Assembly: GCA_002269645.1 (NCBI GenBank)
Contig: NIVC01001743.1
Coordinates: 124,001-188,000, forward strand
Direction: 5' to 3'
DNA: 64,000 bases
Source: Macrostomum lignano
Lineage: Eukaryota
This document shows, in pieces, positions 20,401 to 57,930 of the stretch; position 1 is the first letter of the stretch, and every line of letters begins with the position of its first letter. The notes below the pieces were generated by a model, which did not search any database, was not told the origin of the DNA, and was given only the letters and a program-made list of their open reading frames with translations. The translations under genes and the position numbers were made by a program.

Positions 20401-20529
20401 TGTCGCTACCCGAGCGACCGCGGCCGGCCGCTGATTCCATCGGAAATTTTCAGGGCTGAACAGGCGGCTGCAGCGCTGCAGGCAGCTCAGGGCGTCGAGC
20501 GGTGCGTTGCGTCTGCAATTGCCGACTGA
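11413..20529 (+). CDS. SACS: Sacsin-like protein, 3038 aa, single exon (two sacsin-repeat GHKL ATPase modules, degenerate J-domain, C-terminal HEPN)
   Basis: Uninterrupted 9.1-kb ORF. Module 1: GQSEPLT, ELLQNADDAGA, GRFGLGFNSVYNLTDVP. Module 2: PFGQHEDLT, ELIQNADDAGA, GQYGIGFNCVYNITDAP. LPVHINGHF. HEPN: ARYLKTSRNDL...WVCYLSWQAAEKALVA...CRYP. Family assignment; orthology untested. Confidence 0.95.
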   Translation: MAEVSGGLRLRGQSEPLTRRLKRLLDEYSDGLAVPKELLQNADDAGATEVTLLYDCRGNSDWRGSESLLDPTMANCQGRALWAFNNATFSDEDFDNILQLSGATKLEKTAKVGRFGLGFNSVYNLTDVPQILSRHRMLILDPHGERRGEGYLEAVYASHGDRDTGVELDFQAQPSLLDRYANQFAPFAGVLGCNLQADEGNFAGTLLRLPLRTEAQAAKSKICDRVYSDSEIRGLLRLTAEQADAMLLFTQTVRTFRCLFLPSNATDPSNQTQLVFCVHKSPLKYFQRHAIAMPPLPIAEMSQADQDFAAQSSILKLAEALIESATQGRPGQNQEHRCQATVEVQFQLGNSAHDQFQISTGASTRVWLVCAAVGTGQSLAVALEQRRLGLAPVGAVALPIEQSRRIVPLSRDTQPASLLFCFLPLPVENPFPVMLNASFSVTSSRRHFNEVTVDEKQGVWSLGEWNRVLLTDVICPAYIDALKILSGMSLVNAEISQELWPRFDRATQSVWRPLIEKFYVSLLDGQAPIFHTSAGWKSLGHTVFLDPSILSLGGISDCLSRLAMRLVGQHEGVASLTDGVRRTVEQLGLTNKILQRQWSGETLLLNLVSNMSCLWQSGYSADCFRALKFMLDVISGGGNADWSSASRIVTQNVVNQLKQSCCIPNVGNALYQPLQLLDSSCPAARLFEVNASVFPHSGLQTPDRLRALRSVGLRKDLSWAELLSRAKSVAALSEPQKTERTVLLLSYLDSFRSRFVNQPINQLRNVAFLPALKKPESSCLVWRADQYQNTQLFQPCQLFDASCEDLVSASQLILDETVLRDVTSSRRRDLLAQIGVLNLSQVSNEVAWQQLVALDGTRAGNEETLRVSRCVYRHLSAQISNRRLNSQMVLSMVNQTPNIIWSSSGFIRPAQVSLLRSDTGFEPYLYVLPSELSYDQYKLFLTAAGVNERFQACHFAGVLKLLSQQYSSEPLASSDLELSLKLLNRIGSCNDETLAPESLVAPDQRNILRPFKNLYFNNLSWMDSVWLLDESENEIYFCHEEISPGLCQRLGIPDKRESMLAQLMQPLPFGQHEDLTTRLQNIISGYPLGIELFKELIQNADDAGASKISFIIDRRQHGTERLLSDNWKELQGPALLVYNDSTFSDADIKGIQNLGLGSKRDDAWKAGQYGIGFNCVYNITDAPSFLSDGKIFCVMDPHCRYMPGATFHSPGGMFKNVNRLEGIFPNVFAGYSHENLRHQGGTVFRLPLRTAALAIVSKICKEEVTTDALKALFDKFKTELGRIGLFLLNIRELQLAEISPDGNLQTAFSAKFQPNCILGDFDDYKKKCESAGKQLLIKETQLSDLELSSVIYELTIHCEDLNSRSEQKWLVCQQIGGPIESLPSPLQREVTSGEWRLLSKTGVAACVSGLTKERTKGHVYCLLPLPLTTELPVHINGHFILDPSRRSLWKAHGDADFKEQWNHLLATQLLPQCYGSLLQAAKTSVSQVDKFYSLLPECHRNDEPLWKELARRFFQMAYKKRWAIFPVILDQLKWLPLALSSEDISGTAAFLSPHNFKDCLRNVLMKLQFPLIEPDKVWLEQSLRSSQIEFIPVVDSSTISAFLRGPVCNSLRDTLPIDVSETLLESPEAVATLLTHLINELGVNARKICGTPLNLDAGNRLSVLGSQENPLYLTVFSDLFDRATAATTARTMRRRYPAYGKAKQPYGVVSGTPSGASNYTMHKGNPKFEFVHIKVLSSLSSEAKRNLLQFKLYREFKLEDFSLLLHREYASICSDGFVYLPITHLGFPPSYFEKWIARVWQLINGKCSGESKAMQDLTSARLGNAHLVPVDPSSLLSISKAPCVYNPIKSGLDNSSEALQESLKQLNAPSLSMTNLKLVSSLCGNVGQPESMLRVMEFALNENPKRSAITEKQAVSFLVYIQNHWQELSKRLEEQNLLVRVRQLPVFVTSDGRCCALNSDQACILPASLVADEMDKWKSSSQAIFLKANSNLAHLYGKLKCDEMEEIEVYASFILPVFSNFNSDETRSKHLERLRLLSWSFEALKQQNMALFKKLKLSLGSAELIPVQGNWRHVSSFFNEKVEVFRRFLDSKWFLPQPYNGDRWRRLMEASGLVVECSAEIVIYFANQLHAEGANGITEKLVEKSNFLLEYIDIDDFRAQRTDTAIQKLANTPFVTANNDASLQSLCKSEGVQMARLSECVMFDSRLLCWTVAPFSPPCIATGSCFAKFTKPVTDELFLRHLANLFSAPEFVSSSLQGEAALLRVRVLHSVYEKLNSMLNKGNLISFLKEVPCILVGEMDQSCFVKANRITFTKESVVFPYILLCPKKFWQFKSLFQALGATESATVEQLRLAMELTWREEQGLLRADRLCSVKQCVSSLIKLLEAGAELRLQPGTKLFLPRKCSKETSDSGGVENAFDLVDCTQLIINDSDGYHKRLEDTQGVHFLDLSFCDLGSDKLKFFYHHLATKLDLRRLSDTTSERLLSDCSKQCSDGEDCEVRSKLQDKLQHPKLHLCIVSIMLHENKDSSIKGDELLTKLTNLISDFSVVCLPELRTVLLLDGREQEDSDASKRFYLDSRKCHILMNHSAVPEEEAGDPAQLWKTDFTDAVLKILNTGFTLSDKQEKYLQQVLLMDDSESMQTVLDKHKISLHQKSGQQQFSEPDTQAASILGDPVPEFDKCLLSQMPDRAKDLIEKTVAYRTQEGEFVYARVVKKHTNGGDNPWTEEVTIDTGGGSLTRVQMSELYSVEKRFIHNIPDSPPPSGEELKQTVDRLLNSANALPKKQQGRVLQRVMAHCSGNSRESYEQARMHAAANHEWTRQFDSCQDEWYEETVRVTRYRKVLIAEDVMITRMTRRRHGGVGRGLNFAAAASGSSAGGDRYCWHGPSCVPVPATRRAPRCASQPEEAARYLKTSRNDLLAAAQLAENGEFNNWVCYLSWQAAEKALVALLLKQGQPFDGNQLKLSYLTRVSVTGLSSDQQKNLTDQVIKLAGAIVDDCRYPSDRGRPLIPSEIFRAEQAAAALQAAQGVERCVASAIAD

Positions 20530-25890: not shown

Positions 25891-26090
25891 TGCACGCTAC
25901 TGTCAGTAGTTTAATTTCAAGGTCGCTATTATAATAATCTTGCACACTACTGTCAGTAGTTTAATTTCAAGGTTGCTATTATAATAATCTTGCACACTAC
26001 TGTCAGTAGTTTAATTTCAAGGTTGCTATTATAATAATCTTGCACACTACTGTCAGTAGTTTGACGTCACTGGCCGCTATTATAATAATT
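25891..26090. repeat. 50-bp tandem repeat (~4 units) overlapping the PAPSS stop codon
   Basis: TGCAC(A/G)CTACTGTCAGTAGTTT... starts at 25891, 25941, 25991 and 26041. Confidence 0.9.
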
Positions 26091-26639
26091 GGCCAAAACC
26101 TTCCAAGCCGCCGGGGCCATAAATCCGTCCGGTGGCAGCTGGCCAGTTTTGGCCAGATTTCGCATCCGCGTGCCCGAGATGAAGTCGAAGTCGGACTTTC
26201 TGGCCGGGTCAAAGAAGGCCATCTGGCTGACGGACTTGTCGTAGGCGGCCACGCGGAACGGCACAATCTCCAGCTGGGCGAGGCCGGGGGCCATAGTCAG
26301 GACGGTGGCGCCGTGAGTCGGGTTGTACAGGTCCTGTCCGGGAGTGTCCGGATCGGGCAGACCGGCCGGATCCCGGCCGACAATATAGAAAGAAGCTCCG
26401 GCGTTCATGCGGGCCTTGGCGTGCCACTGCACCTCGGTGGGGCCGGCGTACAGCATGGGGGCGGGGAAGATGGCCGTGACGGTGGTGGCCGGGTCCAGCA
26501 CGCCTTCGCGTAGAACCTCCGCGTGTTGGCGCATGCGGACGTCTAGCGGGACATCGTCCGGTTTTGTCCAGCCGCCGAGGGGGTGCAGCAGAAGCACCGG
26601 GTTGCGGTAGCCGCGCTCCAGCAGGCGGCGGCGGGTGTC
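26067..26639 (-). CDS. PAPSS: PAPS synthase, last exon (ATP sulfurylase C-terminal part)
   Basis: Acceptor ...CCGTCAG|[51 protein letters not shown], stop at 26067. Phase 0. Confidence 0.95.
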
Positions 26640-26764
26640 CTGACGGTTGGCGGGGTTGGTTGGGGTGTTTATCTGGCTGGATGGAGCTTTACTGTTCAAA
26701 TAGGTCAAGTGTTTATTATGTAGGAGGCGTTTATTGGGCTGATGAGGTTTGCCAGGGCGTAATA

Positions 26765-30030: not shown

Positions 30031-30065
30031 CACAAAAATCGCACACAAAGCAGCACAACACCCAC

Positions 30066-30800
30066 CTGAGCCCACTGAGCATCGATGAGGTCCAGTTCAA
30101 CGCTTGGCGCAGCCTCAGCCTCGGCCCTCAGCGCGGCATCGCCATCGGACAGCAGCAGTTCGACAATGTCGGACTGGGCGGCAGCGGCCGGCAGGACCTC
30201 CTGGCTGATCAGCAGGCCAACCACAGATTGCACAGCCTGGCGGATGCTGCAGTCGGCCGTCTGCACAGCGATGTCGGGGCTCAGCGGCGCCTCGTAGGCG
30301 CTGTCGATCCCGGTGAAGCCCTTGATGAGGCCCTCCCTGGCCTTCTTGTACAGCCCCTTGACGTCGCGATCTTCGCACACTTCCAACGGCGCATCGACAA
30401 AGATTTCGAAGAATTTCAATCCGGCCTCGTCGTGCAACTGGCGAGCCCGGTCCCGGTCGTTGCGGAACGGACTGATGAAGGCGGTGATGCACACGATGCC
30501 GCCGTCAGCGAACAGCTTGGCCACCTCGCTAACCCGACGGATGTTCTCTTCGCGATCCTCCTGCGAGAAGCCGAGGTTCTTGTTCAGCCCGGTGCGCATG
30601 TTGTCTCCGTCCAGGGTGTAGGCGGGGAAGCCGGCGGACACCAGGTAGTCCTCCAGGCCGAATGCGATGGTGGACTTGCCGGCGCCCGAGAGGCCGGTCA
30701 GCCAGATGGTGCAGCCGCGGAATCCGCCGCGCTGCCCGATCACCTGGGCGCGCTTGTCGCGGGTCACGTGATGCGCCTGACGGAACACGTTGGTTGCCAT
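30066..30800 (-). CDS. PAPSS: PAPS synthase, APS-kinase exon
   Basis: [13 protein letters not shown]-loop [48 protein letters not shown]; donor CAG|GTGGG. Joined CDS 735+537+573 nt = 614 aa. An AG acceptor at 30821-22 allows an upstream exon or trans-splicing. Confidence 0.95.
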
Positions 30801-33797: not shown

Positions 33798-33884
33798 GTC
33801 TGACTGTCTATCTGTCTTAGTGACTGTCTGTATGTCTGTCTGAGTGTCTGTATGTCTATCTGTCTGCCTGTCTGTCTGTCTGCC

Positions 33885-33945
<61 letters not shown>

Positions 33946-33952
33946 GCCTGCC

Positions 33953-33997
<45 letters not shown>

Positions 33998-34377
33998 GAC
34001 TGTCTATCTATCTGCCTGTCTGTCTGTCTTAGTGACTGTCTGTCTGTCTGTTCTAGTGTCTGCCTGCCTGCCTGTCTGTCTGTCTGTCTGTCTGTCTGTC
34101 TGCCTGTCTGTCTGTCTGTCTGTCTGCCTGCCTGTCTGTCTGTCTGTCTGTCTGTCTGCCTGCCTGTCTGTCTGTCTGTCTGTCTGTCTGTCTGCCTGTC
34201 TGTCTGTCTGTCTGTCTGTCTGCCTGTCTGTCTGTCTGCCTGCCTGTCTGTCTGTCTTAGTGTCTTAGTCACCTTAGTGACTGTCTGTATGTCTGTCTTA
34301 GTGTCTGTCCGTCCTAGTGTCTGACTGTCTGTCTGTCTGACTGTCTATCTGTCTGTCTGTCTGTCTGTCTGCCTGAC

Positions 34378-42906: not shown

Positions 42907-45900
42907 TTCTGTCTCGCAGAGTTCCTCTTCAAATAGAAATTCGTCAACTAATGTTGGCTCAAATTGAAACTCTTCATATAATTGTGCATTGTTGTTTCTA
43001 CTGATGCTGCTGTTGTGGCTGCGGTTGCCAGGTGCAGGCCGCAGCTTGGCAACTAATGGCTGCCTGACAAACCAGTTAATGGCCTGCATGAAATGTAAGC
43101 ATATTGCATATTGTGTTAACATTGTGTTATGTACTTTTATTTTTTGATGCAATTAACTTTGATCTTGCTGTTAAGATCAAAACCTACATGTAATTCATTA
43201 AAAAATTATTCCTTTTCTTTGTTGCTTCCCCAAAGGGGGGGGGGCACAGATTACTAGTTTAGTCACTAATAAAATTAAACATCTTTGTGATAGTTTAGCT
43301 ATTCCTCTTTCAATAGCCAATGTGTCTATTGCAAAATATTTGATATCAAAGAAAAATTATTATCAATAATTTCTTATTAACTTCCTTGCCATAGAATAGT
43401 CTACTAAATACATTTATAAATTTAGAAGATATGAGAAAAAAAGGAAGCTGAAAAAGATATAAACAATGAGGATTGCTATTGTGAAGTTTGAAAAGATCTG
43501 AGCCAAATATAGGCTTTGTGGGTTAGAGTTTATTAGCCCCTAGTTTAAGTCATTAGTTTGCTTCTAATTTTTTTTTAGAAATAAAAGGTCAGAACAGTAG
43601 ATTTTTGAAAATATTTTAATAAGCCCATTATGTATTTATCATTAGAGCTATAGTCAATTTTAATATATACTGCCAATATGGCACTTGACAACCTCTGTTT
43701 TGCAGCCCAATTTGCAGCTTACAATGGTATTAATGCTATCATAATGTTGGAATAATTTTGGTCTTTGCCTTCTAGTTCTATTATACTGTCTATCTTAGAA
43801 TTATTGAGCGCCAGCTACAGAGAGGGTGCCAGCTACAAAGGGGGGCACCAGCTACAGAGAGGGACACCAGCTATAGAGGGGGTTTTGTTAGTCCTATCCC
43901 TAGTATTTTTGGGTCTTTTTTAATTCTTCATATTCCCTGGCTTGGCCTCTCCTAAGACCAAGTCCTTATCAAAGTCTTTATTAGATCATAGTCTAGACTT
44001 GAATCATAGTCTAGTTTTAACTTCTATTACCCAAGAGTCATCAAGACTATCTAAATCTATTTCTGATTGATCTAATTACAATAGACCCTAGAAAATGAAG
44101 TTTAAAAATTAGACTTACATTTTAAATCTCAATTTTATTTCATCATTGCTTTTTTTAACTTAAAGAATATTAAGGTATATAAAATATTTTCTATTTTAAT
44201 AGGATTATTATTATGTCTATCTTTTAAAGGTGCTGATTTTAAATTGCAGCTTTATTTTTATATTGCTTCAACCCAAATCCTTGTAGCTTAAAACCAACTA
44301 CAGGAACATTAGATGCAGGATATACCGGGCTTAAGCTTGTGAGATAGAAAAATTCTTTATATAGATTGATAAAGGCATGATTCTCTATTGAAGTTTTGGT
44401 ATTTTATATGATTATTGACCTCTAAGAATTACAAATATATAGGCCTAGCCATAAAGGTTAAATCTAGGCCTATTATTAAGACATAGGCAATATAACTATT
44501 TTAGAATAGGGAAATTATTTATAGGGATCATAAGCATAGTCCAAACTTCTAAGCATATAAAATATAAGCAATATTTTTTGCTTGATATATATTATATAGG
44601 GAAATAAGATAATACTTATACTATATACTGATTGGTAACAAGCCAATAAAGAAGTCTAGTAGATAGACTAAAAGAATAAGATTAAGATTATATATGTAAG
44701 GCCTAGCATAGTGGGCTCCCTAAATTATATAAATAGTGTAGGCCCCTATCTCTTTTATTACCTAGGACCTGTATTATACATAGGAATTTTTCCATAAAAG
44801 TAGCATCTTTATAAGTTATTATTGTTGTTTATAGTATATAGCTTGTACTTTTAGTACTTTATTTAATTTTAGTATATAGGATATAATAATTATCAGATAC
44901 ATAATGTTGATTAATATTGTTAATGCAAATAGCTGTGGGTATCCTTTTCTAGAAAGTTCAATAAATATCCAATACAGTATTGTACCGATATATTTATGGT
45001 TGTTAGTTAATATCACAAATATGCTAATACTTTAAGTGCCTCCCAAACTGCTCAATTTTTTATCTTGTGTATTCTTTTTGTTAAAACAGATAAAATATAC
45101 TTAATTAAAAGAAGCAAATTTCAACAATTAGGCCTATAAACCTAGAGATTAGTACTATCCACTAATTTTTAATCTATTCAGTATATTTTTATTTATCTTT
45201 TTTATGATAAGTATTGGTTTATCCATAAAGACCCTATATAGCTAAAATCAACATAAAATAAGACTATAAAAGTAACCATAAATCAAATTATATAGTAAAT
45301 TTTAGTAGAAAGCCAATAGATAGATAAAAAACTTATTATAATATAGCAACATTAATTCTCTAGCGAAAGTTTAAGGCCTAAGTATTTAAGTATTTTATGA
45401 AGAGTTATAGAACTATTATATTTGAATTTTTTCATGATTAAATAGGCATAGCCATTAAGCAAATATTAAGCAAATTATAATAGATTATGGCCTAGGCCTA
45501 GGCCTAAATATACCTAGACTCAACTAACAAGTATACTACTGTATTGTACTGATAGTGATACTACCAGGTTACCAGGTACATGTTATGGTTAATAATAATA
45601 GCCTAACTGCCTAAGCTAATATTGTAAAATTTCATAAAATACAAAAGTAAACTGTGCCTTATACTATAGTAGGCCCCCTAGGCCTAAAATTAAAAAAACA
45701 TTGTTAGGATTAGGAAATAGATTTTAGGAAAAACTAGGCCTAGGGCCCTATTGAAATTAAGGTCTATGTTATTAAAAAACAAAAAAATGATTAATGGGCC
45801 TATAGATATCAACATATCTATACTATACATATGGCGCAAATTTGTTCATCCAAATTGAGTCGGCATACAAACCAACGAGTAGCATCTTAATAGGGGCCTA

Positions 45901-45977
45901 TACACCATACGGCATGCCAAGGAAGAAGGAAGGTTCACAGCAACAAGTTCTACTATAAAAAAATAAAACTAAAATAG

Positions 45978-45981
45978 TAGT

Positions 45982-46052
<71 letters not shown>

Positions 46053-46064
46053 ATAGTAGTAGTA
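45978..46064. repeat. (TAG)n microsatellite
   Basis: Direct reading. Confidence 0.95.
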
Positions 46065-46360
46065 AATTTGGCTCAGGCTTAAGGAGCCTGTTATGCCAGT
46101 ATGATCCGATTTATTTAGTATTTATTCAAAAGGTTAAATTTTACACGATATTGTTCAAGCTGTCCGTAAAATTAAATTGCTTTGTCTTTAATGGCACAAT
46201 AGTTGAAACAAAACACATGTTGCAGCTCACTAAAAATTATGGTACTAACTTAATAAAGTCTTTCTTAATGTTTTAATAACATTCTTTTTGTCTTTTATTC
46301 TTTTTATTTCAGATTTTTTAAATTTGAGTTTAACGTTGCGGTAAGCTAGCGCGTAATCAT

Positions 46361-46695
46361 CTAGTAGTAATAATAATAATAGGATCTATCTACTAGTATG
46401 TGGGCAAGGAGTTGAGCGGTTCGGAATTCCAAGAAAAACAGCAGTATAACTATTAAACTCTGTTAATATTTGACTGCCTTAACAACCTAACTTAGCACAA
46501 TTTTTCACTTTCTTCTTGGCGATTGTCATTCAAAAATAAAAACTTTATAGCACGTATCTCCCTCTAATTATGGAGACAAAAAGTTATACTTCACAAATTG
46601 GTTCTGGTTCTGGAACCAGAGCAAGCAATATGAAAAGGCCCTAGTAGTAATAATAATGGGATCTATCTACTAGTATGTGGGCAAGGAGTTGAGCG
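46361..46695. repeat. Pair of ~55-bp direct repeats (46361-46418, 46641-46695) around ~220 bp
   Basis: CTAGTAGTAATAATAAT(A/G)GGATCTATCTACTAGTATGTGGGCAAGGAGTTGAGCG occurs twice. Confidence 0.9.
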
Positions 46696-46870
46696 TATGT
46701 GTATAAAACTATATAATGAGTATAAATATTTTTATGCAATTTTAATTTTATGATTTCTCAGTTTTGTAGCAGACGAAATTACTGTCAACCTTGCAGGGTA
46801 CAACATGAGACCTCTCCTCTGCTCTGCTCTAATACAATAGGCCTAATAGGCGTTGGCATAGGCCTACGCC

Positions 46871-47473
46871 GGTTTCCATGCATTTCGGTGCCCATGCTTT
46901 TCGGTGCCAGGCATTTCGGTGCCCCAGTTTGCTTTTCGGTGCCAAACTTGAATATGACGCCAAATCAGTAATTGATAAGTTATATTAAGATATTTTCTCT
47001 GAAATCTGAAATAGCACAAAGCAGCTGCAAATTGTTATTATAATAACTGGGTATAAGGCGTGCATAGAGGTAGTCATTTTGTTTTTGTCTCCATTTCGTT
47101 GATCAATGCCATACAAATCTACATGTACATTGGGTGCATAAGAAAAATGACAAGTAGCCTATGGGCATTCACTTAATACATTATGTACTTACTCGTCAGA
47201 GTTACTTCTGATAAAATTGGCAGATGGCACTTAAATTACTTTGTCACTGGATGCAAAGAAGTACATCTGCACTAATTCACTTAGCTGGATGTACAGAGAG
47301 GAGAGAATAAACTTGTTCAGTTATTCGTTATTGCCTTCGATTGAATCTAGAATAACATGATTGACTTTTAGCTTCATTCCATGTGTTTGTTAAGCTGGGA
47401 CCAAAAAGCAAAATGAGGCACCGAAAAGCAAACTAGGGCACCAAAATGCCTGGCACCAAAAAGCGTGGGTACC
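46871..47473. mobile_element. 603-bp MITE with GG termini and 8-bp TSD (Merlin-like candidate)
   Basis: CCTACGCC at 46863-46870 and 47474-47481. About 57 bp of imperfect inverted repeat built from TTTCGGTGCC subunits. Confidence 0.75.
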
Positions 47474-50400
47474 CCTACGCCTACCTAAGTAAGTAAGTTG
47501 GGGTCCTAAGATCAAGATTAAAGAATCCCAATGCAAAGGCAAATTTGAGAATAAAATATATAAAACCTAGCCTAACTTTTTAGTAGCATACAATTTTACA
47601 AAAGTGGGTACAGAACAGAATACCAAAGCTAGGCCTATGACCTAATTATATCTAGGCATATAGGGCCTATAATTAGGCCCCTAGTTTTTCACTTTAGAGT
47701 TCCACAAACTTGTATTCCTTGTATTGTACTGTAACCAAATTTTTCTTATATCTATAGCCTATAGGAGATATCTGTAGCCATATCCTTAAAATTTTCCCAT
47801 AGCCTAGCCTATCTGTATCGACTATAGGCCCCCTAGTTATAGGCCTACCCATTTTTGTAGCTAATAAATTTCTATAACTGTTGTATAGGCCTAACAGCTA
47901 ATGCCAAGACCTAGACCCTGATAGTGATAGATACCTTTAAGAAGCAACTAAATGTTATGCCTATATATACAATGCAACCATGCTAAAGCTGAATTGCTAC
48001 ATTGGCTTTTGGACTTAAAGTGTAGGCCTACATCAGTTGAGATAGCAAGACCAATACTAAGGCCTATACTTTACATAAGGCCATAAGGCTATCTAATCTA
48101 ATGTAGGCTTCTAACCTATTGCGCAGGCAACAACTTTGACTAGGCCTAGCCAACCATGTCATCTAGTTGGAGCCTAGAAGTTTGCCCTCTATTGCCCTAA
48201 TCCTTTATATGAAGTGCTAATGCTCAAACTATATAGACTGCATAGGCAAGGCCAAAAGCAAGTGGGCAATTCCATATAATTATGGTCGTAACATGACAGG
48301 CTATTTTTACTTATAAAATGAAATCTAATAATAGAATACACTAAACCAATATTTTAAATGAAAGATTTTTTTGTCAAGAATATTTTTATAGAGTTTCATG
48401 TAGATATCATCATTAATATAGATGCTATTAAACCTTGAATGGCACTTCTGGTCGTAACGACAGGATTTTTGACAGATAGAAACTAAAAGGTAAAAGTCTT
48501 ATAACATTTTTCATTTTTGATATTTTGCAATAAATTTTTTAAAATTCGACTAAGAACATCTTCAGAAATCATACTCTTTTTGTAGAATATATAAACTCAA
48601 AAAGGCAACAAAGATACAAAAGAAAAGGCAGCCTTATGGTCGTAACATTCTGGTCGTAACATATTTTGTTCTGTCAATTCAGTAACTTAGAGGTACCAAT
48701 ATATTAAAAATATAATTGATTATTTGTTCATCAATACTTTTATCTGATGATGCAAGTACTATACTTTTATCTATAGTTTGTTTCAACCTTCCAAAGCTTT
48801 CTATTTGTTTTTAAAAGGTTCACAAACTTAATGATGTCTTTTGCTTAAAAAACTGTCCAAATTTTTACAAAAATTACTTTTTGCCACTTGATAACATACT
48901 AATCTAACATTTTATCATTCATTTATTCTTAGATTGTAGATGTTACACATAAAAAACATTTGGTAAAAAAATTGGCTAATCAGGCAGTGGCAAGCAAAAA
49001 TATTGACTTTTTTCTATTTTCCAAATATGTCCATCTTATATGGAATGAGCCAAGTATCCTTTTTCTATGCCCTCTTCCTTTTCTTTTCTTCTTTCCTCTC
49101 TGCTGCTCTGCCCCCTTTTTTCTTTTTCTCTCCCTTCTTATTTCTCCCTTTTCCCTTCTTCTCTTTTCTTTCTTATTTCCTTTTCTTAATACTCTTTCTT
49201 TTTCTCCTCTTCCTTCTTTTTTTGTCTCCTTATTATATTGTTTGAATAACTAAAGTAATGAAATCAAAGTCTAATTCTTACTAAGATCATCTGTGAAAAC
49301 AATGGCCTATTTATTAGTTAGTTTCCAAGAAGCCTCCTTTGCAATATAGGCTTTAGTCTTTTTTGATAGTGGTAGATGCTAGGCAGCTTCTTTATTGGCT
49401 TCATTTATCTTACTTAGGCCTCTCATCATGATATCATCCTAATTACAACATGCATATGATGTCAAAAATATTGTTTTAATCCTTGACCTCAAGGACTTAA
49501 GAGCTCCTTTTATATTGGAAGTGAATACATATCTCAAGTAGGCCCTAACCCTTTGTTCCAACCTTAATGTGTATTAAGGTTGGAATATGCATTAAGGTAT
49601 AGGCCTTATTAATTAAGGTATAGTGTAAAACATTTGAGTCCCTAACCCTAGGGACTTACAAGCTCCTTTGTATTGAAAATGAAAGCATTTATCTTTTCTT
49701 AACATTAGGCCTAGCCCCTTACCACCCAACCATAATGTGCATTTGGTGTCAAAACTAGGCCTATCTATTGCTAAGTTTCCAAATCTATCTATATTTAAGG
49801 ACTTGAGATTAAGAGCTCCCCTTTGAAAATGAAAACATTCATCTCAACTAATAACTTTAGCCCTTAGCACCTAGCCACAATATGGACATGTCATTGATAA
49901 TCTATGTAGATGCTTGAGTGAGTCCTAAATTCTAGGCATTTCACTTTGAAACTAGCAATATTCAATTATTTCTATTACCCTAACCCCATCAAATCTATGG
50001 CTCCAATGGTCTTGCAATTTTTGGCTGAATGGTACTATTAGATATAAGAAAAATGTGTTCCTGTAACCATATCTATAACTTCCCATAGCTATAGATATGA
50101 TGGAATTCTAACATCTTTTGGTGTATTTTCTAACCATCTAGCTTAACCTAGGCCTAATGTTTATATTTTATTAGCATTGCCACCTTTTCCATCAATTAAT
50201 AAATTTGATATATAATATTGGCTTATGGTTTTATGAGTTTTCAGTTTCTTAAAGGTCTTGAGTTGCAGTTATTAAACTAGTATAGACAGTAACTTATTCT
50301 TTGAGCTCAGTATATGGCTAGTTTGGTTAAGAGTGACAAATATGTTCATTGACATTAGTGAGTATTTTTATATTCTATATTTTTTAACTCGGTTAATATG

Positions 50401-50527
50401 AATATGTGACCATCTGTATGAGTATGCTGTCAAGCTTGAATTTCGTTTACAGTTGATTAAATTGAATTTCTATACATTTTCAGTCTGACTGTGCCATTGT
50501 GCATCAACATTTAATTGTTTTTCCTAT

Positions 50528-50552
50528 ATGGACAAGTACTCCTCGCGAAGAG
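50528..50552 (+). CDS. DUF3715 (TASOR/TEX15-type) protein, exon 1
   Basis: ATG GAC AAG TAC TCC TCG CGA AGA G|GTAAG; phase 1 matches exon 2. Confidence 0.6.
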
Positions 50553-50643
50553 GTAAGCTGTCAGCTCATACTGACAGTATGTTTTATGTTTAATACTCAT
50601 TATGGTCAATAAATGGAAGTGTCATTCTGAAATTAAATTTTAG

Positions 50644-50802
50644 TTATTCGCGAGGCTGTCAACCTTGGATCTGACTATGCCACTCAAATTTTTCGCGGCT
50701 TTGTTGACAGCTTCTTGAATCCTCCATCAGCCACCCTAGATCAGTGGCGCCTGGTGAAACTGGAAATGCTAGAGAATGGCTACTTTGAGGAGGAGTTTTC
50801 AG
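50644..50802 (+). CDS. DUF3715 protein, exon 2
   Basis: TTTAG|TT ATT CGC... IREAVNLGSDYATQIF...KLEMLENGYFEEEFS; donor G|GTAAG; 159 nt, phase 1/1. Confidence 0.75.
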
Positions 50803-51179
50803 GTAAGATTTGACATCTCAGCAGCTCCATTCCATCTTGATCCTTGGCCTACTCTTATCCTAAATTTATGAGCCTTTGATCAGCGAGGCTAGATTCGTCT
50901 CATTGGTAGTTCCGCTTTTTTAAACTCGGGTTTACAAGTCTACATATTTTTAAGGAAATATTCGATATGCACTACTAAAAGTATCATGTAGCACAGAAAG
51001 TAAACTTGCAAAGTTGCTTATAACTATATCAATAAATGCCTTTGCGAGGGGACACTTGTGCAACATTATTTTTGTCCTTAAATATCCTTAAATGTCCGTA
51101 AAGACGGTCTCTGACTGTTTTTACCCTGGTTGCCTTCTGGCAGCTTGTCTAAGGGTTGTGCGCAATCCGATTGGCTATG

Positions 51180-52350
51180 CCAATTTCTAAGGGTCCGCCC
51201 CGGAGGGGCTGTGCCCATCTAAAAATAAACCCTATCTTTCTTAGGTGTACATTCCAATTATTTGGCCCTCGGCCTTGGTTTCGGGGGGGTGGTGCCCGGA
51301 GTGAGTAGGTTCTCTGGACTGCAGTGTGGCTAGGACGGGACTGAGCCCCCCGGTCGTACCCGCCCTGCAGGAAAGAACGACCAATTCACAAAGGTGTACG
51401 GTAGACCCAGTAGCATGCCAGCCCTGAGGCTGAGCACCCGGGCTGCAGGTCGGCAAGCTGCCTGCTTTAGGGCTATGGTGCTCCTCCCCACTGCCATTCT
51501 TTTTTTCTGGGCTGGCATCCCAGCGCGGTTTTATCCCTTGCTTTTATTTGTTTTTACCCGGCCATTAGTAGCCATCCAATCTATGGAGTTATGAGCTCTG
51601 CCCTCTGCCCGGTCCATCTTGCCCTGTCCTCGGGTCCATCTCCTGGCTCCTGCTGTAAGGTCCCTGCTTGCGTGTCTCTGGCTCTCATCCTGACAGTGGA
51701 TTGGTGTCCTGGGAAGGATGTTCGTCCCGAACCGGGGACAACCGGCTGAGTCCGGAGTCCTCTTGCCCTGGGTGCCTCTTCTCCCGACCCCTTGGCCTGG
51801 CCCCCAATGATGAGCTGGATAGGCGATGCCCTTGGGTTGGCAGCAATAGAGGTGTGCTATGCTTCTCCGCCTAGAGTCTCCCCCTCGGATACAAGCCTTC
51901 CAGACTCACTCCAAAAAAGAGCTGGGTAGTGAAAAGCCTTGAGGCTCGAGACCTACAGTTGGCCGGTGCTTAGGACTGTATAGGATCGCTCTTGGTAAAT
52001 AGCTGCCCAGACTCTCTCCAATAGTTAGCCCTTTTCCAAGACTTCTGGGTTTCCCCGCTCTTGGACGGCTTTTCAGTAATTCCAATTTCTGTTTTTTCGC
52101 GCACTCCCGAGGACCTGTCTGCTGGGGGGTGGCCTGGGTGGACTCGGTCCTAGCACCGTCCCTGATTCCACTGTTGGTTGGGCGGTGTCTTGTACCATAG
52201 ACTTGAGGTCCTTTGCCCTCTCCCAACTAAATTGGTTTGGGTATCTCGGGTTCACAGTCTTATCTGTGCCCTTGGCAGTGCCCTCTGCGGCAGAGCCCCT
52301 CCCAGGGCTGATCCGCGGGTAGCCCCGTAGCTTCCCACCCCGTTTAACAA
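51180..52350 (-). mobile_element. Unclassified GC-rich retroelement-like fragment in intron 2
   Basis: Sharp GC island with a purine-rich minus strand, broken K/R/G/P-rich ORFs, and a short (AAC)n run at the 52350 end. No diagnostic motif recognised. Confidence 0.3.
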
Positions 52351-52789
52351 CAACAACAAATATCCCAGATTCATATGATCGCATTGTTCTATCCTATTAG
52401 CTGTGCGATTTGCTGGTATATTTTGGACACAGTTCAATGTATAATTTATGTAATGCAAAATTAATGGCGATTAATATACAAATGACTGTTAGCAAATGTT
52501 TGAATTTGAAACTGTTTAACTTTTGGTTTGAAATAACTGCCTGCTCGTCAACTTGCGCAAAGCTGCTCAGATCTTCCCCTGTCCAGGAGGAATTTTCTTT
52601 GCTTTCTTAGCTTGCGCAAGGGCTTGGGTGTGGCTAGATTAATAACTTTGTTATGGGGGCATTTCGTTACATTGTGAGCAAATTTTTGGCTTAGAATTTG
52701 CTAATTGGTCATTTTTGCAACTGGAGTGTCCGAACATGCTGTTATTATGATTTTTACACATTGCTTCTACGGTTTTATCTGCCTCTCCT

Positions 52790-53600
52790 CTCCCCCTCTG
52801 TCCTTGAGAATCTGCCTCTCCACTCCCCTCTGTCCTTGAGAATCTGCCTCTCCGCCTCCCTCAGTCCTTGAGAATCTGCCTCTCCTCTCCCCCTCAGTCC
52901 TTGAGAATCTGCCTCTCCACTCCCCCTCTGTCCTTGAGAATCTGCCTCTCCGCCTCCCTCAGTCCTTGAGAATCTGCCTCTCCTCTCCCCCTCAGTCCTT
53001 GAGAATCTGCCTCTCCTCTCCCCCTCTGTCCTTGAGAATCTGCCTCTCCGCTCCCTCAGTCCTTGAGAATCTGCCTCTCCTCTCCCCCTCTGTCCTTGAG
53101 AATCTGCCTCTCCTCTCCCCCTCAGTCCTTGAGAATCTGCCTCTCCGCTCCCTCAGTCCTTGAGAATCTGCCTCTCCGCCTCCCTCAGTCCTTGAGAATC
53201 TGCCTCTCCTCTCCCCCTCAGTCCTTGAGAATCTGCCTCTCCGCCTCCCTCAGTCCTTGAGAATCTGCCTCTCCTCTCCCCCTCAGTCCTTGAGAATCTG
53301 CCTCTCCGCCTCCCTCAGTCCTTGAGAATCTGCCTCTCCTCTCCCCCTCAGTCCTTGAGAATCTGCCTCTCCTCTCCCCCTCAGTCCTTGAGAATCTGCC
53401 TCTCCACTTCCCCTCTGTCCTTGAGAATCTGCCTCTCCACTCCCCCTCTGTCCTTGAGAATCTGCCTCTCAGCTCCCCCTCTGTCCTTGAGAATCTGCCT
53501 CTCAGCTCCCCCTCTGTCCTTGAGAATCTGCCTCTCAGCTCCCCCTCTGTCCTTAAGAATCTGCCTTTCAGCCCCCCCCCTCTGTCCTTAAGAATCCGCT
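52790..53600. repeat. 31-34-bp intronic minisatellite (TCCTTGAGAATCTGCCTCTCC core)
   Basis: About 24 units. Confidence 0.93.
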
Positions 53601-53934
53601 CTTCCTCTCCGCTCCTGAGGTCGTTGTAATCACTGAATCCTCAAATTAATTCTCAGCCTACTCGTCAACTTGTTAGAAGCACAATCAATTTGCTTTTAAC
53701 AAGGGCTTGGGTAAGGCAAGAGTATGTACCGGATGCTCAGGTCTCGTTTCATCTTAATGTCAAAGATGGATCATTTGGCGTTTGAAAGATAAAATGCATC
53801 TTTCAAATTTGAGCCAAGGCCTCTTGCATCCGTACAACAAATAGTTTTTGTATCAATTTTTCTTGGAATTGTGCCCTCATTAAGTGCTTCATTCACTCAT
53901 TAAACGAAATATCAAGGGTCTATGCCGCCTTTAC

Positions 53935-54070
53935 CCAGTCAAATAAGACATCAAAGGGTTTTGCCGCTATTTTGCGACTTTTTTTTCCAATAAAATAAAG
54001 ACATCAAAGGGTTATGCCGCTATTTTGCGACGCCTTTTCCCAATAAAATAAAGACATCCAAGGGTTACGT
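53935..54070. repeat. ~53-bp tandem repeat (AAGACATCAAAGGGTT), ~2.5 units
   Basis: Direct reading. Confidence 0.75.
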
Positions 54071-54132
54071 CTCCTTTTTTTAAACTAGCCAAACATCCAT
54101 TTGTCTTGCCTCTTGCCACTATTTTTCACCAG

Positions 54133-54536
54133 AGAGGCGGGCCGAGTTCTCGCGCCAAGGCCTGGCTCAGGACGAGCTGTCCACTCACTATGGCTTCCTG
54201 GCCGCGGCTAGCGAAGAGCTGGTCGATCTAACGCTACGAGAAGGCCTCAAAGTTCGCTTCTGTCCAATTAACTCGCTTGGCTACTGCATTTCCGGTGTTC
54301 ACCTGTGCGTACACGGCGACGTCTGTCTGCAGGAGGCGGCGCTGGAGACTGGAGACGATGGCGAGCAAATTGTACTGGTTGCGTTCAAGTTCATGTTTGG
54401 CAGGACCCGGCGAGTGACCCCCGTCACGCCTAAGGATATGGCTATTATAGCGCCTAGTCCTGGGTTCAACTGCCACATTCCCGATGTCAGGCCTGGCAGG
54501 ACCGACTCTTTGTCTGACCAATACCTCAGATCATTG
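54133..54536 (+). CDS. DUF3715 protein, exon 3 (pseudo-PARP core); missed by the ORF track
   Basis: CACCAG|AG AGG. ERRAEFSRQG...ELSTHYGFL...REGLKV...LGYCISGVHL...VAFKFMFGRTRRV...PSPGFNCHI...SL; donor TTG|GTGAG; 404 nt. Confidence 0.85.
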
Positions 54537-54554
54537 GTGAGTTCTGCAGTGTCA

Positions 54555-54935
54555 GTCAGTAGGTGTCTCAGGCCATCATATCTGTGTGTCAGTCAGTAGG
54601 TGCCTCAGGCCATCATATCTGTGTGTCAGTCAGTAGGTGCCTCAGACCATCATATCTGTGTGTCAGTCAGTACAGTAGGTGCCTCAGACCATCATATCTG
54701 TGTGTCAGTCAGTAGGTGCCTCAGACCATCATATCTGTGTGTCAGTCAGTAGGTGCCTCAGGCCATCATATCTGTGTGTCAGTCAGTAGGTGCCTCAGGC
54801 CATCATATCTGTGTGTCAGTCAGTAGGTGCCTCAGGCCATCATATCTGTGTGTCAGTCAGTAGGTGTCTCAGGCCATCATATCTGTGTGTCAGTCAGTAG
54901 GTGCCTCAGGCCATCATGTCTGTGTGTCAGTCAGC
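54555..54935. repeat. 37-bp intronic minisatellite (AGTCAGTAGGTGCCTCAGGCCATCATATCTGTGTGTC)
   Basis: About 10 units filling intron 54537-54959. Confidence 0.95.
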
Positions 54936-54959
54936 CCTCATTCCCTTGTCTGTCCGCAG

Positions 54960-55853
54960 GCCTACCTGTACGAGTTCGAGAACTCTTTCTACCACCCGGT
55001 GCCCCGGCCCCGCCAGTGCAGCCCCCTGGCCGCTCTCTACCTGCGTCGCAGGCGCGGCAGCGGAGTTCCACCGAAACCGCCGCAGTTTCTGCCGACCGCC
55101 GGTCGCTTTCCCTCCGCGGCTGTCACGGCCTCGTTGGCCTCGTCTCTGTCCTCTCGGCAGCCGTCAATTCCATCCATGCCTCCGCCAGGCGTGATGATGT
55201 CGATGTCGGGTCTGATCTCAGCAGCCAGTAGTCAGGCTCAAACTGCTGCCGTTATGAGTCAGCAGCCAATGTTGCGGCTCGCCCCGGATGTGGCTAGTGC
55301 AGTTGGCAGCGTTCTGTCCGAGCTGCGGCATGCCTCATCAACGACCGCCAGTGCGCAGCGGCAGCAGCAGCAGCAGCCTCCGCCTCCGCCTCCGCCGAAA
55401 CTTGACGGTATTCGCGGCTTTTTAAAGAATGCGTCTGGCTCTGCTGCAGCAGCAAGCGGCAATGCGAGCGGCAGCAGCACTAGCAATAATAATAAAGTGC
55501 AACCGCTGATGCGGCAGCAGACTTCAGCGCCGATTGCCGCCTCTTCAACGCCTCTGTTAGCAGTTCGGCAAGCGTCGAAGCAGTTGCAGCAGCAGCAGCC
55601 GCCACCTCCGCTAGCCGAGCCGCCAAGACGAAACGCCTTCCTGACTGCTAGTGCAGCCGCCTCCTCCGCCGCTGCCACAACAGCAACTGTCGGTGCCACC
55701 AGCGCGGCTAGTTCAACTGGCGGCAATCGGTTTCATCCCTACGCCCGGCTGTATACGGCGGCCGCATCGTCCGTGTCTAACAATGGTAGCAGCAATCAGC
55801 AAAGCGCGTCAACTGTTGGTCGAAAGTCTGGCTTTGGAGTCGGTCGAAGATAG
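54960..55853 (+). CDS. DUF3715 protein, exon 4 (domain end plus low-complexity Q/P/A/S tail)
   Basis: TGTCCGCAG|GCC. AYLYEFENSFYHPVPRPRQCSPLAALYL, then a disordered tail with RFHPY near the end. Four exons give 493 aa. Confidence 0.85.
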   Translation, partial: AYLYEFENSFYHPVPRPRQCSPLAALYLRRRRGSGVPPKPPQFLPTAGRFPSAAVTASLASSLSSRQPSIPSMPPPGVMMSMSGLISAASSQAQTAAVMSQQPMLRLAPDVASAVGSVLSELRHASSTTASAQRQQQQQPPPPPPPKLDGIRGFLKNASGSAAAASGNASGSSTSNNNKVQPLMRQQTSAPIAASSTPLLAVRQASKQLQQQQPPPPLAEPPRRNAFLTASAAASSAAATTATVGATSAASSTGGNRFHPYARLYTAAASSVSNNGSSNQQSASTVGRKSGFGVGRR

Positions 55854-56159
55854 TACATAAATTTTTGTAAAAGATTTATAATGACCGAATAGATAGCCAG
55901 AGAATAGCATTTAATTGTCGTTGGTTTCATTATGCAGAACAGTATAGTACAAAATTCAATAAATTATGTACTACAATATTCGTATTCGAGATCTTAAACT
56001 AATTGGTCTTGTGGTTATACTGGTGGAATTGTTTAAAACACGATTGTTTTGTATTCTTTTGATAAAAAATCATGACACCACGTAGTTAAAAATAATTTAA
56101 ATTTAAAACTGTTATCTGATTAAGGCTTTCCACTTTTTTACCAAGTAACTTGTCAGTTT

Positions 56160-56580
56160 GGAGCAGGAGTGAGGCTTGTGTCTCAGTGGAGGTTGGGGCA
56201 GGAGTGAGGTTGGTGTCTCAGTGGGGGCTGGGGCAGGAGTGAGGTTGGTGTCTCAGTGCGGGTTGGGGCAGGAGTGAGGCTTGTGTCTCAGTGGGGGCTG
56301 GGGCAGGAGTGAGGTTGGTGTCTCAGTGGGGGCTGGGGCAGGAGTGTGGTTGGTGTCTCAGTGAAGGCTGGGGCAGGAGTGAGGTTGGTGTCTTAGTGGG
56401 GGTTGGGGCAGGAGTGAGGTTGGTGTCTCAGTGGAGGCTGGGGCAGGAGTGAGGTTGGTGTCTTAGTGGGGGTTGGGGCAGGAGTGAGGTTGGTGTCTCA
56501 GTGGGGGCTGGGGCAGGAGTGAGGTTGGTGTCTCAGTGGGGGCTGGGGCAGGAGTGAGGTTGGTGTCTCAGTGGGGGTAG
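56160..56580. repeat. 35-bp G-rich minisatellite (GGGGCAGGAGTGAGGTTGGTGTCTCAGTGGGGGCT)
   Basis: About 12 units. Confidence 0.95.
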
Positions 56581-57104: not shown

Positions 57105-57930
57105 TTAAATTAGGCGAAGCTATCCTAAATTAGGCGCCGCTATCCTAAATTAGGCGCCGCTGTCCTAAATTAGGTGCAGATATTCTTCTAAATTAGGCGC
57201 AGCTATCCTAAATTAGGCGAAGCTATCCTAAATTAGGCGAAGCTATCCTAAATTAGGCGCCGCTATCCTAAATTTAGCGCCGCTGTCCTAAATTAGGTGC
57301 AGATATTCTTCTAAATTAGGCGCAGCTATCCTAAATTAGGCGAAGCTATCCTAAATTAGGCGAAGCTATCCTAAATTACGCGCAGCTATCTTAAATTAGG
57401 CGAAGCTATCCTAAATTAGTCGAAGCTGTCCTAAAATAGGCAAAGCTGTCCTAAATTAGGCGAAGCTATCCTAAATTACGCGCAGCTATCTTAAATTAGG
57501 CGAAGCTATCCTAACTTAATCGAAGCTATCCTAAATTAGGCGAATCTATCCTAACTTAATCGAAGCTATCCTAAATTAGGCGAAGCTGTCCTAAATTAGG
57601 CGAAGCTATCTTAAATTAGTCGAAGCTGTCCTAAAATAGGCGAAGCTGTCCTAAATTAGGCGAAGCTATCCTAAATTAGGCGAGGCTATCCTAAATTAAG
57701 CGAAGCTATCTTAAATTAGGCGAGGCTATCCTAAATTAGGCGAGGCTATCCTAAATTAGGCGAAGCTATCCTAAATTAAGCGCCGCTGTCCTAAATTAGG
57801 CGAAGCTATCCTAAATTAGGCGAAGCTATCCTAAATTAGGCGCAGCTATCCTAAATTAGGTGAGACTATCTTAAATTAAGCGCCGCTGTCCTAAATTAGA
57901 CGCCGCTATCCTTTATTAGACGAAGCTTTT
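57105..57930. repeat. 20-bp minisatellite (CTAAATTAGGCGAAGCTATC)
   Basis: About 40 units with a near-palindromic CCTAAATTAGG core. Confidence 0.95.

Follow-up and report, generated by a model that had tools for sequence, protein, structure and literature searches.

A stand-alone pseudo-PARP protein of the DUF3715 family encoded by Macrostomum lignano, and its possible part in transposon silencing

Introduction

Can the domain that TASOR and TEX15 have in common be of use in a protein that contains little else? This question is raised by a gene on the + strand of contig NIVC01001743.1 in the Macrostomum lignano genome assembly GCA_002269645.1. We analysed a stretch of 64,000 nucleotides of this contig (positions 124,001 to 188,000 of the forward strand), which is referred to below as the window and is numbered from its first letter; the gene occupies positions 50528–55853. 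From the letters of the DNA, it had been predicted to be a compact TASOR/TEX15-type pseudo-PARP gene and a candidate HUSH-like silencing factor. The domain in question, DUF3715 or RDTS, is essential for transposon silencing in mammals, both where it is directed by the HUSH complex and where it is directed by PIWI-interacting RNAs (piRNAs). The current work shows that the gene almost certainly encodes a stand-alone pseudo-PARP, that is, a domain of approximately residues 18–230 with a tail of 263 residues behind it. Whether such a protein would silence transposons is a separate matter, and one on which our answer is more guarded.

Results

The gene model and its standing in the databases

The gene is made of four exons, with GT...AG at every border, which add up to 1482 nucleotides and give a protein of 493 amino acids followed by a TAG stop. 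Its parts are as follows.

50528–50552 (+): exon 1, with the ATG, codons 1–8 and base 1 of codon 9; GT donor at 50553
50644–50802 (+): exon 2, residues 9–61, the N-terminal helices of the pseudo-PARP domain; AG/GT borders
54133–54536 (+): exon 3, residues 62–196, the DUF3715/RDTS core, with Leu84 at 54198–54200, His118 at 54300–54302 and Tyr192 at 54522–54524
54960–55061 (+): start of exon 4, residues 197–230, the final strands of the domain and the β8–β9 loop, then RRRR (residues 225–228), with Phe202 at 54975–54977
55062–55853 (+): remainder of exon 4, residues 231–493, the A/S/P/Q-rich low-complexity tail and the TAG stop
55958–55963 (+): AATAAA, a possible polyadenylation signal by match to the consensus, about 105 nucleotides past the stop

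An in-frame TGA lies at 50486–50488, 14 codons 5' of the ATG, and therefore the open reading frame (ORF) does not extend upstream within exon 1. The four phase-compatible exons had been proposed in the original prediction, and the spliced product is indeed identical, residue for residue, to the GenBank protein PAA64525.1 (P0102, BOX15_Mlig032307g1, labelled 'partial'), which carries in addition 12 residues of read-through from the 5' leader. A second GenBank protein, PAA83647.1 (P0002, BOX15_Mlig000758g2, 488 residues), is approximately 97% identical, from which it departs at 11 positions and by one 5-residue indel. The two share the N-terminus MDKYSSRR, and the same stop codon ends both models. 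The gene is Macrostomum lignano Mlig032307.g1, and the gene model is correct.

The core exon had been described as absent from the ORF track, which is essentially right. In its frame, the stop-free stretch runs from 54084 to 54596, but the first ATG, GTG or TTG is internal, so that the start-to-stop list gives just the ORF at 54393–54599 (68 residues) and most of the exon stays invisible. It is in this exon that 82 of the 111 tblastn matches obtained with DUF3715 proteins land.

A further database entry, UniProt A0A1I8FKM2 (P0001), was compared with positions 50760–55230. It shares the core sequence, the reading frame shifting before Arg69 and again after His208-Pro209, and its last ~75 residues correspond to exon 4 translated out of frame, matching the ORF at 54827–55231. 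The entry, which comes from another source, thus reads as a prediction with frame-shifts made either from this gene or from a near-identical copy, and the frame-shifts are probably an artefact of an earlier, error-prone assembly; no encoding contig is on record for it.

The protein of PAA83647.1 is labelled in UniProt as 'TASOR pseudo-PARP domain-containing protein'. Public databases already contain the model of the gene as well as the assignment of its domain, and the protein is an uncharacterised member of a known family. Given these annotations, and since invertebrate DUF3715 proteins with and without SPOC-DomI have already been reported (PMC10578480), the novelty implied by the original prediction was overstated. 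In the literature, we found no paper naming either locus tag (Mlig032307g1 or Mlig000758g2) and nothing on TASOR in flatworms or other spiralians; the supplements of M. lignano papers yielded neither the locus tags nor DUF3715.

A DUF3715 domain with the fold of the TASOR pseudo-PARP

The Pfam model DUF3715 (PF12509) matches residues 66–218 over its full profile (1–150 of 150) with an E-value of 4.2e-21 and a score of 75.9 bits, the gathering score of the family being 28.5 bits. The motifs from which the domain had been recognised (FSERRAE, ELSTHYGFL, GLKV, GVHL, FKFMFG, PSPGFNCH, YLYE and RPRQCSPLA) are all present. When all PDB sequences were searched, the sole real match was the human TASOR pseudo-PARP domain, 6TL1 (E = 2.7e-14, residues 28–222). 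This alignment crosses the exon 2/3 and 3/4 junctions free of gaps and therefore provides independent support for both.

Two database proteins stood in as queries for the search of representative proteins and for structure prediction, namely P0001, which is identical over exon 3, and P0002, the product of a second copy of the gene, which is identical over the whole domain. The AlphaFold2 model was built on P0002 using an alignment of 16 sequences; only with this alignment was a usable domain model obtained, an alignment of 3 sequences having given an unusable one with a predicted local distance difference test score (pLDDT) of 31.6. The pLDDT is mostly 75–94 over residues 21–230 (76–85 for residues 21–60), with a strand predicted at 216–226. 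In a Foldseek search of the PDB, the top match was again 6TL1 (E = 6.6e-16, target-normalised template-modelling (TM) score 0.84, root mean square deviation 2.9 Å, 25% identity), followed by the catalytic domains of tankyrase and PARP10 with TM scores of 0.62–0.75 and identities of 10–13%. The predicted structure is a PARP fold whose nearest counterpart is TASOR, in keeping with what had been anticipated from the motifs.

Key residues were mapped by profile alignment (hmmalign) and compared with those discussed in the TASOR structure paper (PMC7532188).

Leu84: TASOR Leu184, at the position of the PARP histidine; the L184H mutation of those authors 'restores' the NAD+ residue (PMC7532188)
His118: TASOR Tyr217, the sole catalytic residue kept by TASOR; Y217A is tolerated (PMC7532188)
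Tyr192: TASOR Tyr295, the plug of the nicotinamide cleft (PMC7532188)
Tyr200-Glu201-Phe202: TASOR Tyr303-Glu304-Tyr305, the start of the β8–β9 loop; Y305A abolishes silencing (PMC7532188)

The leucine of YGFL had been placed at the PARP histidine, as in TASOR, and GVHL had been read as a replacement of GVYL; both assignments agree with the alignment, in which Leu84 falls on Leu184 and His118 on Tyr217. Judged on these two positions of the triad, Leu for His and His for Tyr, the NAD+ site is degenerate. The β8–β9 loop (Tyr200–Gln215) is 16 residues long, compared with 14 in TASOR (Tyr303–His316) and 5 in canonical PARPs (PMC7532188). Phe202 keeps an aromatic side chain at the position of Tyr305, as do the aligned fish TASOR-like proteins, which also have Phe there; in TASOR, silencing is lost not only with Y305A but also upon deletion of 307–312 (PMC7532188). 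The window protein agrees with the DUF3715/RDTS family in every family feature that could be tested.

A disordered tail in place of further domains

Beyond the domain, the protein consists of low-complexity sequence. A, S, Q, P, G and T make up 67% of residues 231–493, which contain 21 K and R against 4 D and E, and the pLDDT is below 50 from residue 235 on (235–488 of the P0002 model), with no confident fold. A Pfam scan of the window protein at E-values up to 10 gave, besides DUF3715, just spurious low-complexity matches in the tail. No SPOC, DomI, TASOR alpha/beta (PF23314), PIN (PF24630) or TEX15 domain (PF15326) was found in the window protein; as controls, PF23314 and PF24630 match the fish TASOR P0088 at 1e-37 and 9e-52, and PF15326 matches the fish relative P0112. 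Nor were such regions found nearby: tblastn with 103 DUF3715 proteins, including TASOR- and TEX15-like ones of 2,000–4,000 residues, gave no match in the 64-kb window outside the gene, and ten open frames downstream on the + strand had no Pfam match. Pfam, tblastn and the pLDDT of the model thus agree with the layout originally put forward, DUF3715 plus a disordered tail with no SPOC domain. Longer transcripts that would add SPOC are unlikely, because these searches were negative and both GenBank models share their stop.

Two short patterns may be mentioned here. RFHPY (residues 453–457) conforms to the R-x2-5-PY core found in nuclear import signals of the PY type, and residues 225–228 are RRRR. 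These are pattern matches only and were not used as evidence.

Selection on the domain as seen from a second copy

The genome holds a second locus, L001 (NIVC01000412.1), which is collinear with the first through exons, introns and flanks at approximately 90–96% identity. All six splice sites are kept, exon identity is ~96–100% (100% for exon 1, 99–100% for the exons of the domain), and the reading frames are intact in both copies. The differences between the copies are distributed unevenly.

Domain, residues 1–230: 5 synonymous, 0 non-synonymous; ratio of non-synonymous to synonymous rates (dN/dS) 0
Tail, residues 231–493: 7 synonymous, 11 non-synonymous; dN/dS ~0.57

With a dS of ~0.03 between the copies, the finding that five of five changes in the domain are synonymous has a probability of ~0.0008 under neutrality (computed from site counts, 24% of the domain sites being synonymous). 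Strong purifying selection thus acts on the domain, whereas the tail is far less constrained.

Compact relatives

A HMMER search, run exhaustively against 1.84 billion representative proteins, gave 101 matches at E-values up to 1e-3. The best matches outside Macrostomum were short proteins of ~430–810 residues, in which an N-terminal DUF3715 is followed by a long low-complexity tail.

Helobdella, XP_009021406.1: 532 residues
Owenia, CAH1772610.1: 661 residues
Tubulanus, XP_074655125.1: 578 residues
Lineus, XP_064643369.1: 539 residues
Lingula, XP_013395306.1: 622 residues
Capitella, ELU13889.1: 556 residues
Didymodactylos (rotifer), CAF0985287.1: 768–812 residues
Pomacea (snail), 'TASOR-like': 450–493 residues

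DUF3715 was the sole Pfam domain in all seven that were scanned (Helobdella, Owenia, Tubulanus, Lineus, Lingula, Didymodactylos and P0007). Lingula and Owenia also possess longer DUF3715 proteins.

The tails of the annelid, nemertean and brachiopod members (P0004, P0005, P0007, P0015, P0019, P0023 and P0118) contain one or two copies of a motif, NPxLxxIVxxINxKP, the first of which lies 25–60 residues past the domain, except in Lingula, whose single copy is far further downstream. A hidden Markov model (HMM) of the motif gave 20–33 bits for the members on which it was trained and 26.6 bits for Capitella, which had been held out, compared with a maximum of 4.9 bits for shuffled tails. We know of no description of this motif. 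By eye, twin copies had been suspected in the M. lignano tail (PDVASAVGSVLSE and PKLDGIRGFLKNA); they were rejected, the motif HMM giving zero matches.

In a neighbour-joining tree of the domain, the window protein joins the compact proteins in the point estimate. The tree is poorly resolved, however: the exact clade was recovered in only 13 of 100 bootstraps, and in ~60–65 of 100 the window protein stood with compact proteins inside splits of at most 12 taxa. A 'compact spiralian DUF3715 family' is thus a reasonable but unproven grouping.

Comparison with characterised systems

The resemblance to TASOR lies in the DUF3715 fold, for which 6TL1 is the best match by sequence as well as by structure, and in details thereof, namely the leucine at the PARP histidine position, the tyrosine at the Tyr295 plug, and the extended β8–β9 loop with an aromatic residue at Tyr305. 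The differences are that Tyr217 is replaced by His118, that the loop is two residues longer, and that the window protein is without SPOC, DomI, alpha/beta and PIN, hence without any of the HUSH-assembling regions. It is also far shorter, 493 residues as opposed to ~1,800 for the TASOR-like proteins of fish grouping with P0088; human TASOR is longer than these.

As for TEX15, it too has an N-terminal DUF3715, and the mouse TEX15 fragment P0006 (70.9 bits, 34% identity) is among the best of the distant matches, with common motifs such as NFDCH and RPRQC-P-A. A fish TASOR scored 38 bits when searched with this same truncated query; at the level of the domain, the protein is no further from TEX15 than from TASOR. 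Unlike TEX15, which is vertebrate-specific (PMC10578480), the window protein is without the TEX15 domain PF15326. The compact spiralian proteins have the same layout as the M. lignano protein, which differs from the annelid, nemertean and brachiopod ones in the tail motif. More distant relatives are ZAP/PARP13 and plant RCD1, in which non-catalytic PARP folds likewise serve as interaction modules (PMC7532188); they are not among the top structural matches. From active PARPs, finally, the window protein is set apart by Leu84 and His118 in place of the His-Tyr pair of the NAD+ site. TASOR-like proteins have been defined by the order DUF3715-SPOC-DomI (PMC10578480), and the window protein falls outside the TASOR-like proteins, outside TEX15 and outside the active PARPs.

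Introns, repeats and neighbouring genes

Intron 2 contains a GC-rich insertion of 1270 bp (51088–52357) that is not in L001. It has a duplicated AAATATCC on both sides and a (CAA)n tail at its end, and no further copies of it were found in the window or in L001. The insertion resembles a retroposon that landed after the divergence of the two copies. Minisatellites are found in and downstream of the gene.

52777–53610: 33 bp × 25.5
54549–54934: 37 bp × 10.3, filling nearly all of intron 3 (54537–54959)
56159–56577: 35 bp × 12
57106–57927: 20 bp × 41

Intron 3 is longer in L001 (669 bp), and the number of repeats in this intron probably differs between the copies.

Elsewhere in the window, a single uninterrupted ORF of 3038 residues (11413–20529, + strand) is sacsin-like: it encodes two Pfam SACS domains (E = 1.8e-141) and, at the C-terminus, a HEPN domain. 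For the intron-containing M. lignano genome, so long a gene without introns is unusual. Exons of a PAPS synthase lie on the − strand at 26070–26708 and 30033–30800 (ATP-sulfurylase, E = 1.4e-51; APS kinase, E = 4.2e-71), and an ORF at 33852–34265 (+ strand) weakly matches the C_tripleX cysteine-rich repeat (E = 1.7e-6). The 6 kb 5' of the gene (44000–50000) are very AT-rich, with a GC content of 0.27–0.36 compared with 0.545 in the 2-kb block that holds exons 3 and 4, and include simple repeats of the poly-serine/poly-leucine type at ~45900–46270.

Discussion

What might a protein of this kind do? In TASOR, the pseudo-PARP domain is needed neither for HUSH assembly nor for chromatin targeting, the partner-binding regions being located outside it, but it is needed for deposition of trimethylated lysine 9 of histone H3 (H3K9me3) and for LINE-1 repression (PMC7532188). 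Furthermore, LINE-1 silencing is maintained when the RDTS of TASOR is exchanged for that of TEX15 (PMC10578480). By analogy with these two proteins, we tentatively suggest a role in transposon silencing for the window protein, while rating this role as somewhat below an even chance. Going by homology, the protein would ADP-ribosylate nothing and, like the RDTS of TASOR and TEX15, would be a non-catalytic effector in nuclear, transcript-directed transposon repression. The contacts to partners or to RNA might then be supplied by the disordered, basic tail, which stands in place of SPOC/DomI-type domains. As a whole, this explanation, whereby a stand-alone pseudo-PARP acts as a non-catalytic silencing effector through its tail, is the best we can offer, and we would place it only just short of evens.

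A number of observations weigh against it. The window protein is without the regions by which TASOR brings HUSH together, and because these partner-binding regions are not there, it cannot serve as a HUSH scaffold in the way that TASOR does. For the same reason, and since the TASOR pseudo-PARP is itself dispensable for HUSH assembly (PMC7532188), the label 'HUSH-like' of the original prediction is not supported. The one catalytic residue retained by TASOR, Tyr217, is His118 here, though Y217A leaves TASOR unimpaired. The alignment behind the structure model is shallow, at 16 sequences. The motif HMM detects no copy of NPxLxxIVxxINxKP in the M. lignano protein, and likewise none in the rotifer one. 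Moreover, how RDTS acts on the molecular level is not known even for TASOR (PMC10578480).

The alternative to be taken most seriously is that the protein is a pseudo-PARP adaptor with a job unrelated to silencing, either as a transcription-factor hub like RCD1 or as a cofactor of RNA binding or decay like ZAP/PARP13, with the tail mediating assemblies. Other inactive PARP folds do such jobs, and the TASOR domain binds single-stranded RNA weakly (PMC7532188); outside the domain, the window protein has no feature of TASOR or TEX15, its tail being basic and of low complexity. Against this, its sequence and fold are specifically those of DUF3715 rather than ZAP- or RCD1-like, and both DUF3715 lineages characterised so far silence transposons, with interchangeable domains (PMC10578480). 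We consider the adaptor unlikely on balance, albeit far less so than the readings that follow.

It is very improbable that the gene is an ordinary TASOR orthologue of which the SPOC, DomI and PIN exons have been missed, through splicing out of exon 4 or in exons further downstream. Just ~8 kb downstream of the gene lie inside the window, which leaves this idea some room; however, two independent GenBank models share one stop codon, neither tblastn with the 103 proteins nor the Pfam scan of the ten downstream frames gave anything in the window outside the gene, the TASOR_alpha-beta and PIN_TASOR models match fish TASOR and not the window protein, and the compact architecture recurs in other phyla. 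We attach equally little weight to a decaying, functionless duplicate left by a recent genome duplication. The existence of two copies with ~96–100% exon identity, the fast tail with its dN/dS of ~0.57 and the retroposon in intron 2 of the window copy would suit such a history, but both copies have intact reading frames and splice sites, and the domain shows 0 non-synonymous against 5 synonymous changes. Least probable of all is an active mono-ADP-ribosyltransferase. Although the protein has the PARP fold, with a polar residue, His118, in the former NAD+ site, the NAD+ histidine is Leu84, the tyrosine is His118, and Tyr192 aligns with the cleft-plugging Tyr295 of TASOR, which is the closest structure and binds no NAD+ analogues (PMC7532188).

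The reading we prefer, a non-catalytic silencing effector reduced to its pseudo-PARP domain and tail, invites a broader but doubtful proposal, to which we give rather low odds. Stand-alone RDTS proteins might constitute an old, Spiralia-wide family, separate from TASOR-like proteins and TEX15, whose members would be minimal effectors of nuclear, transcript-directed silencing of a piRNA- or HUSH-like kind, recruited through their disordered tails. If this is true, M. lignano, where RNA interference (RNAi) by soaking and transgenesis are available, would be the simplest setting in which to learn the molecular action of RDTS, a point not yet understood for TASOR and TEX15. A nearly domain-only protein of 493 residues is easier to study than TASOR or TEX15, relatives of which reach ~3,000 residues or more in this search. 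The practical value of the finding thus lies in a minimal RDTS protein, present in two near-identical copies, in an animal in which RNAi and transgenesis work. Should its loss have no effect on transposons, this would mean that the domain has uses beyond genome defence.

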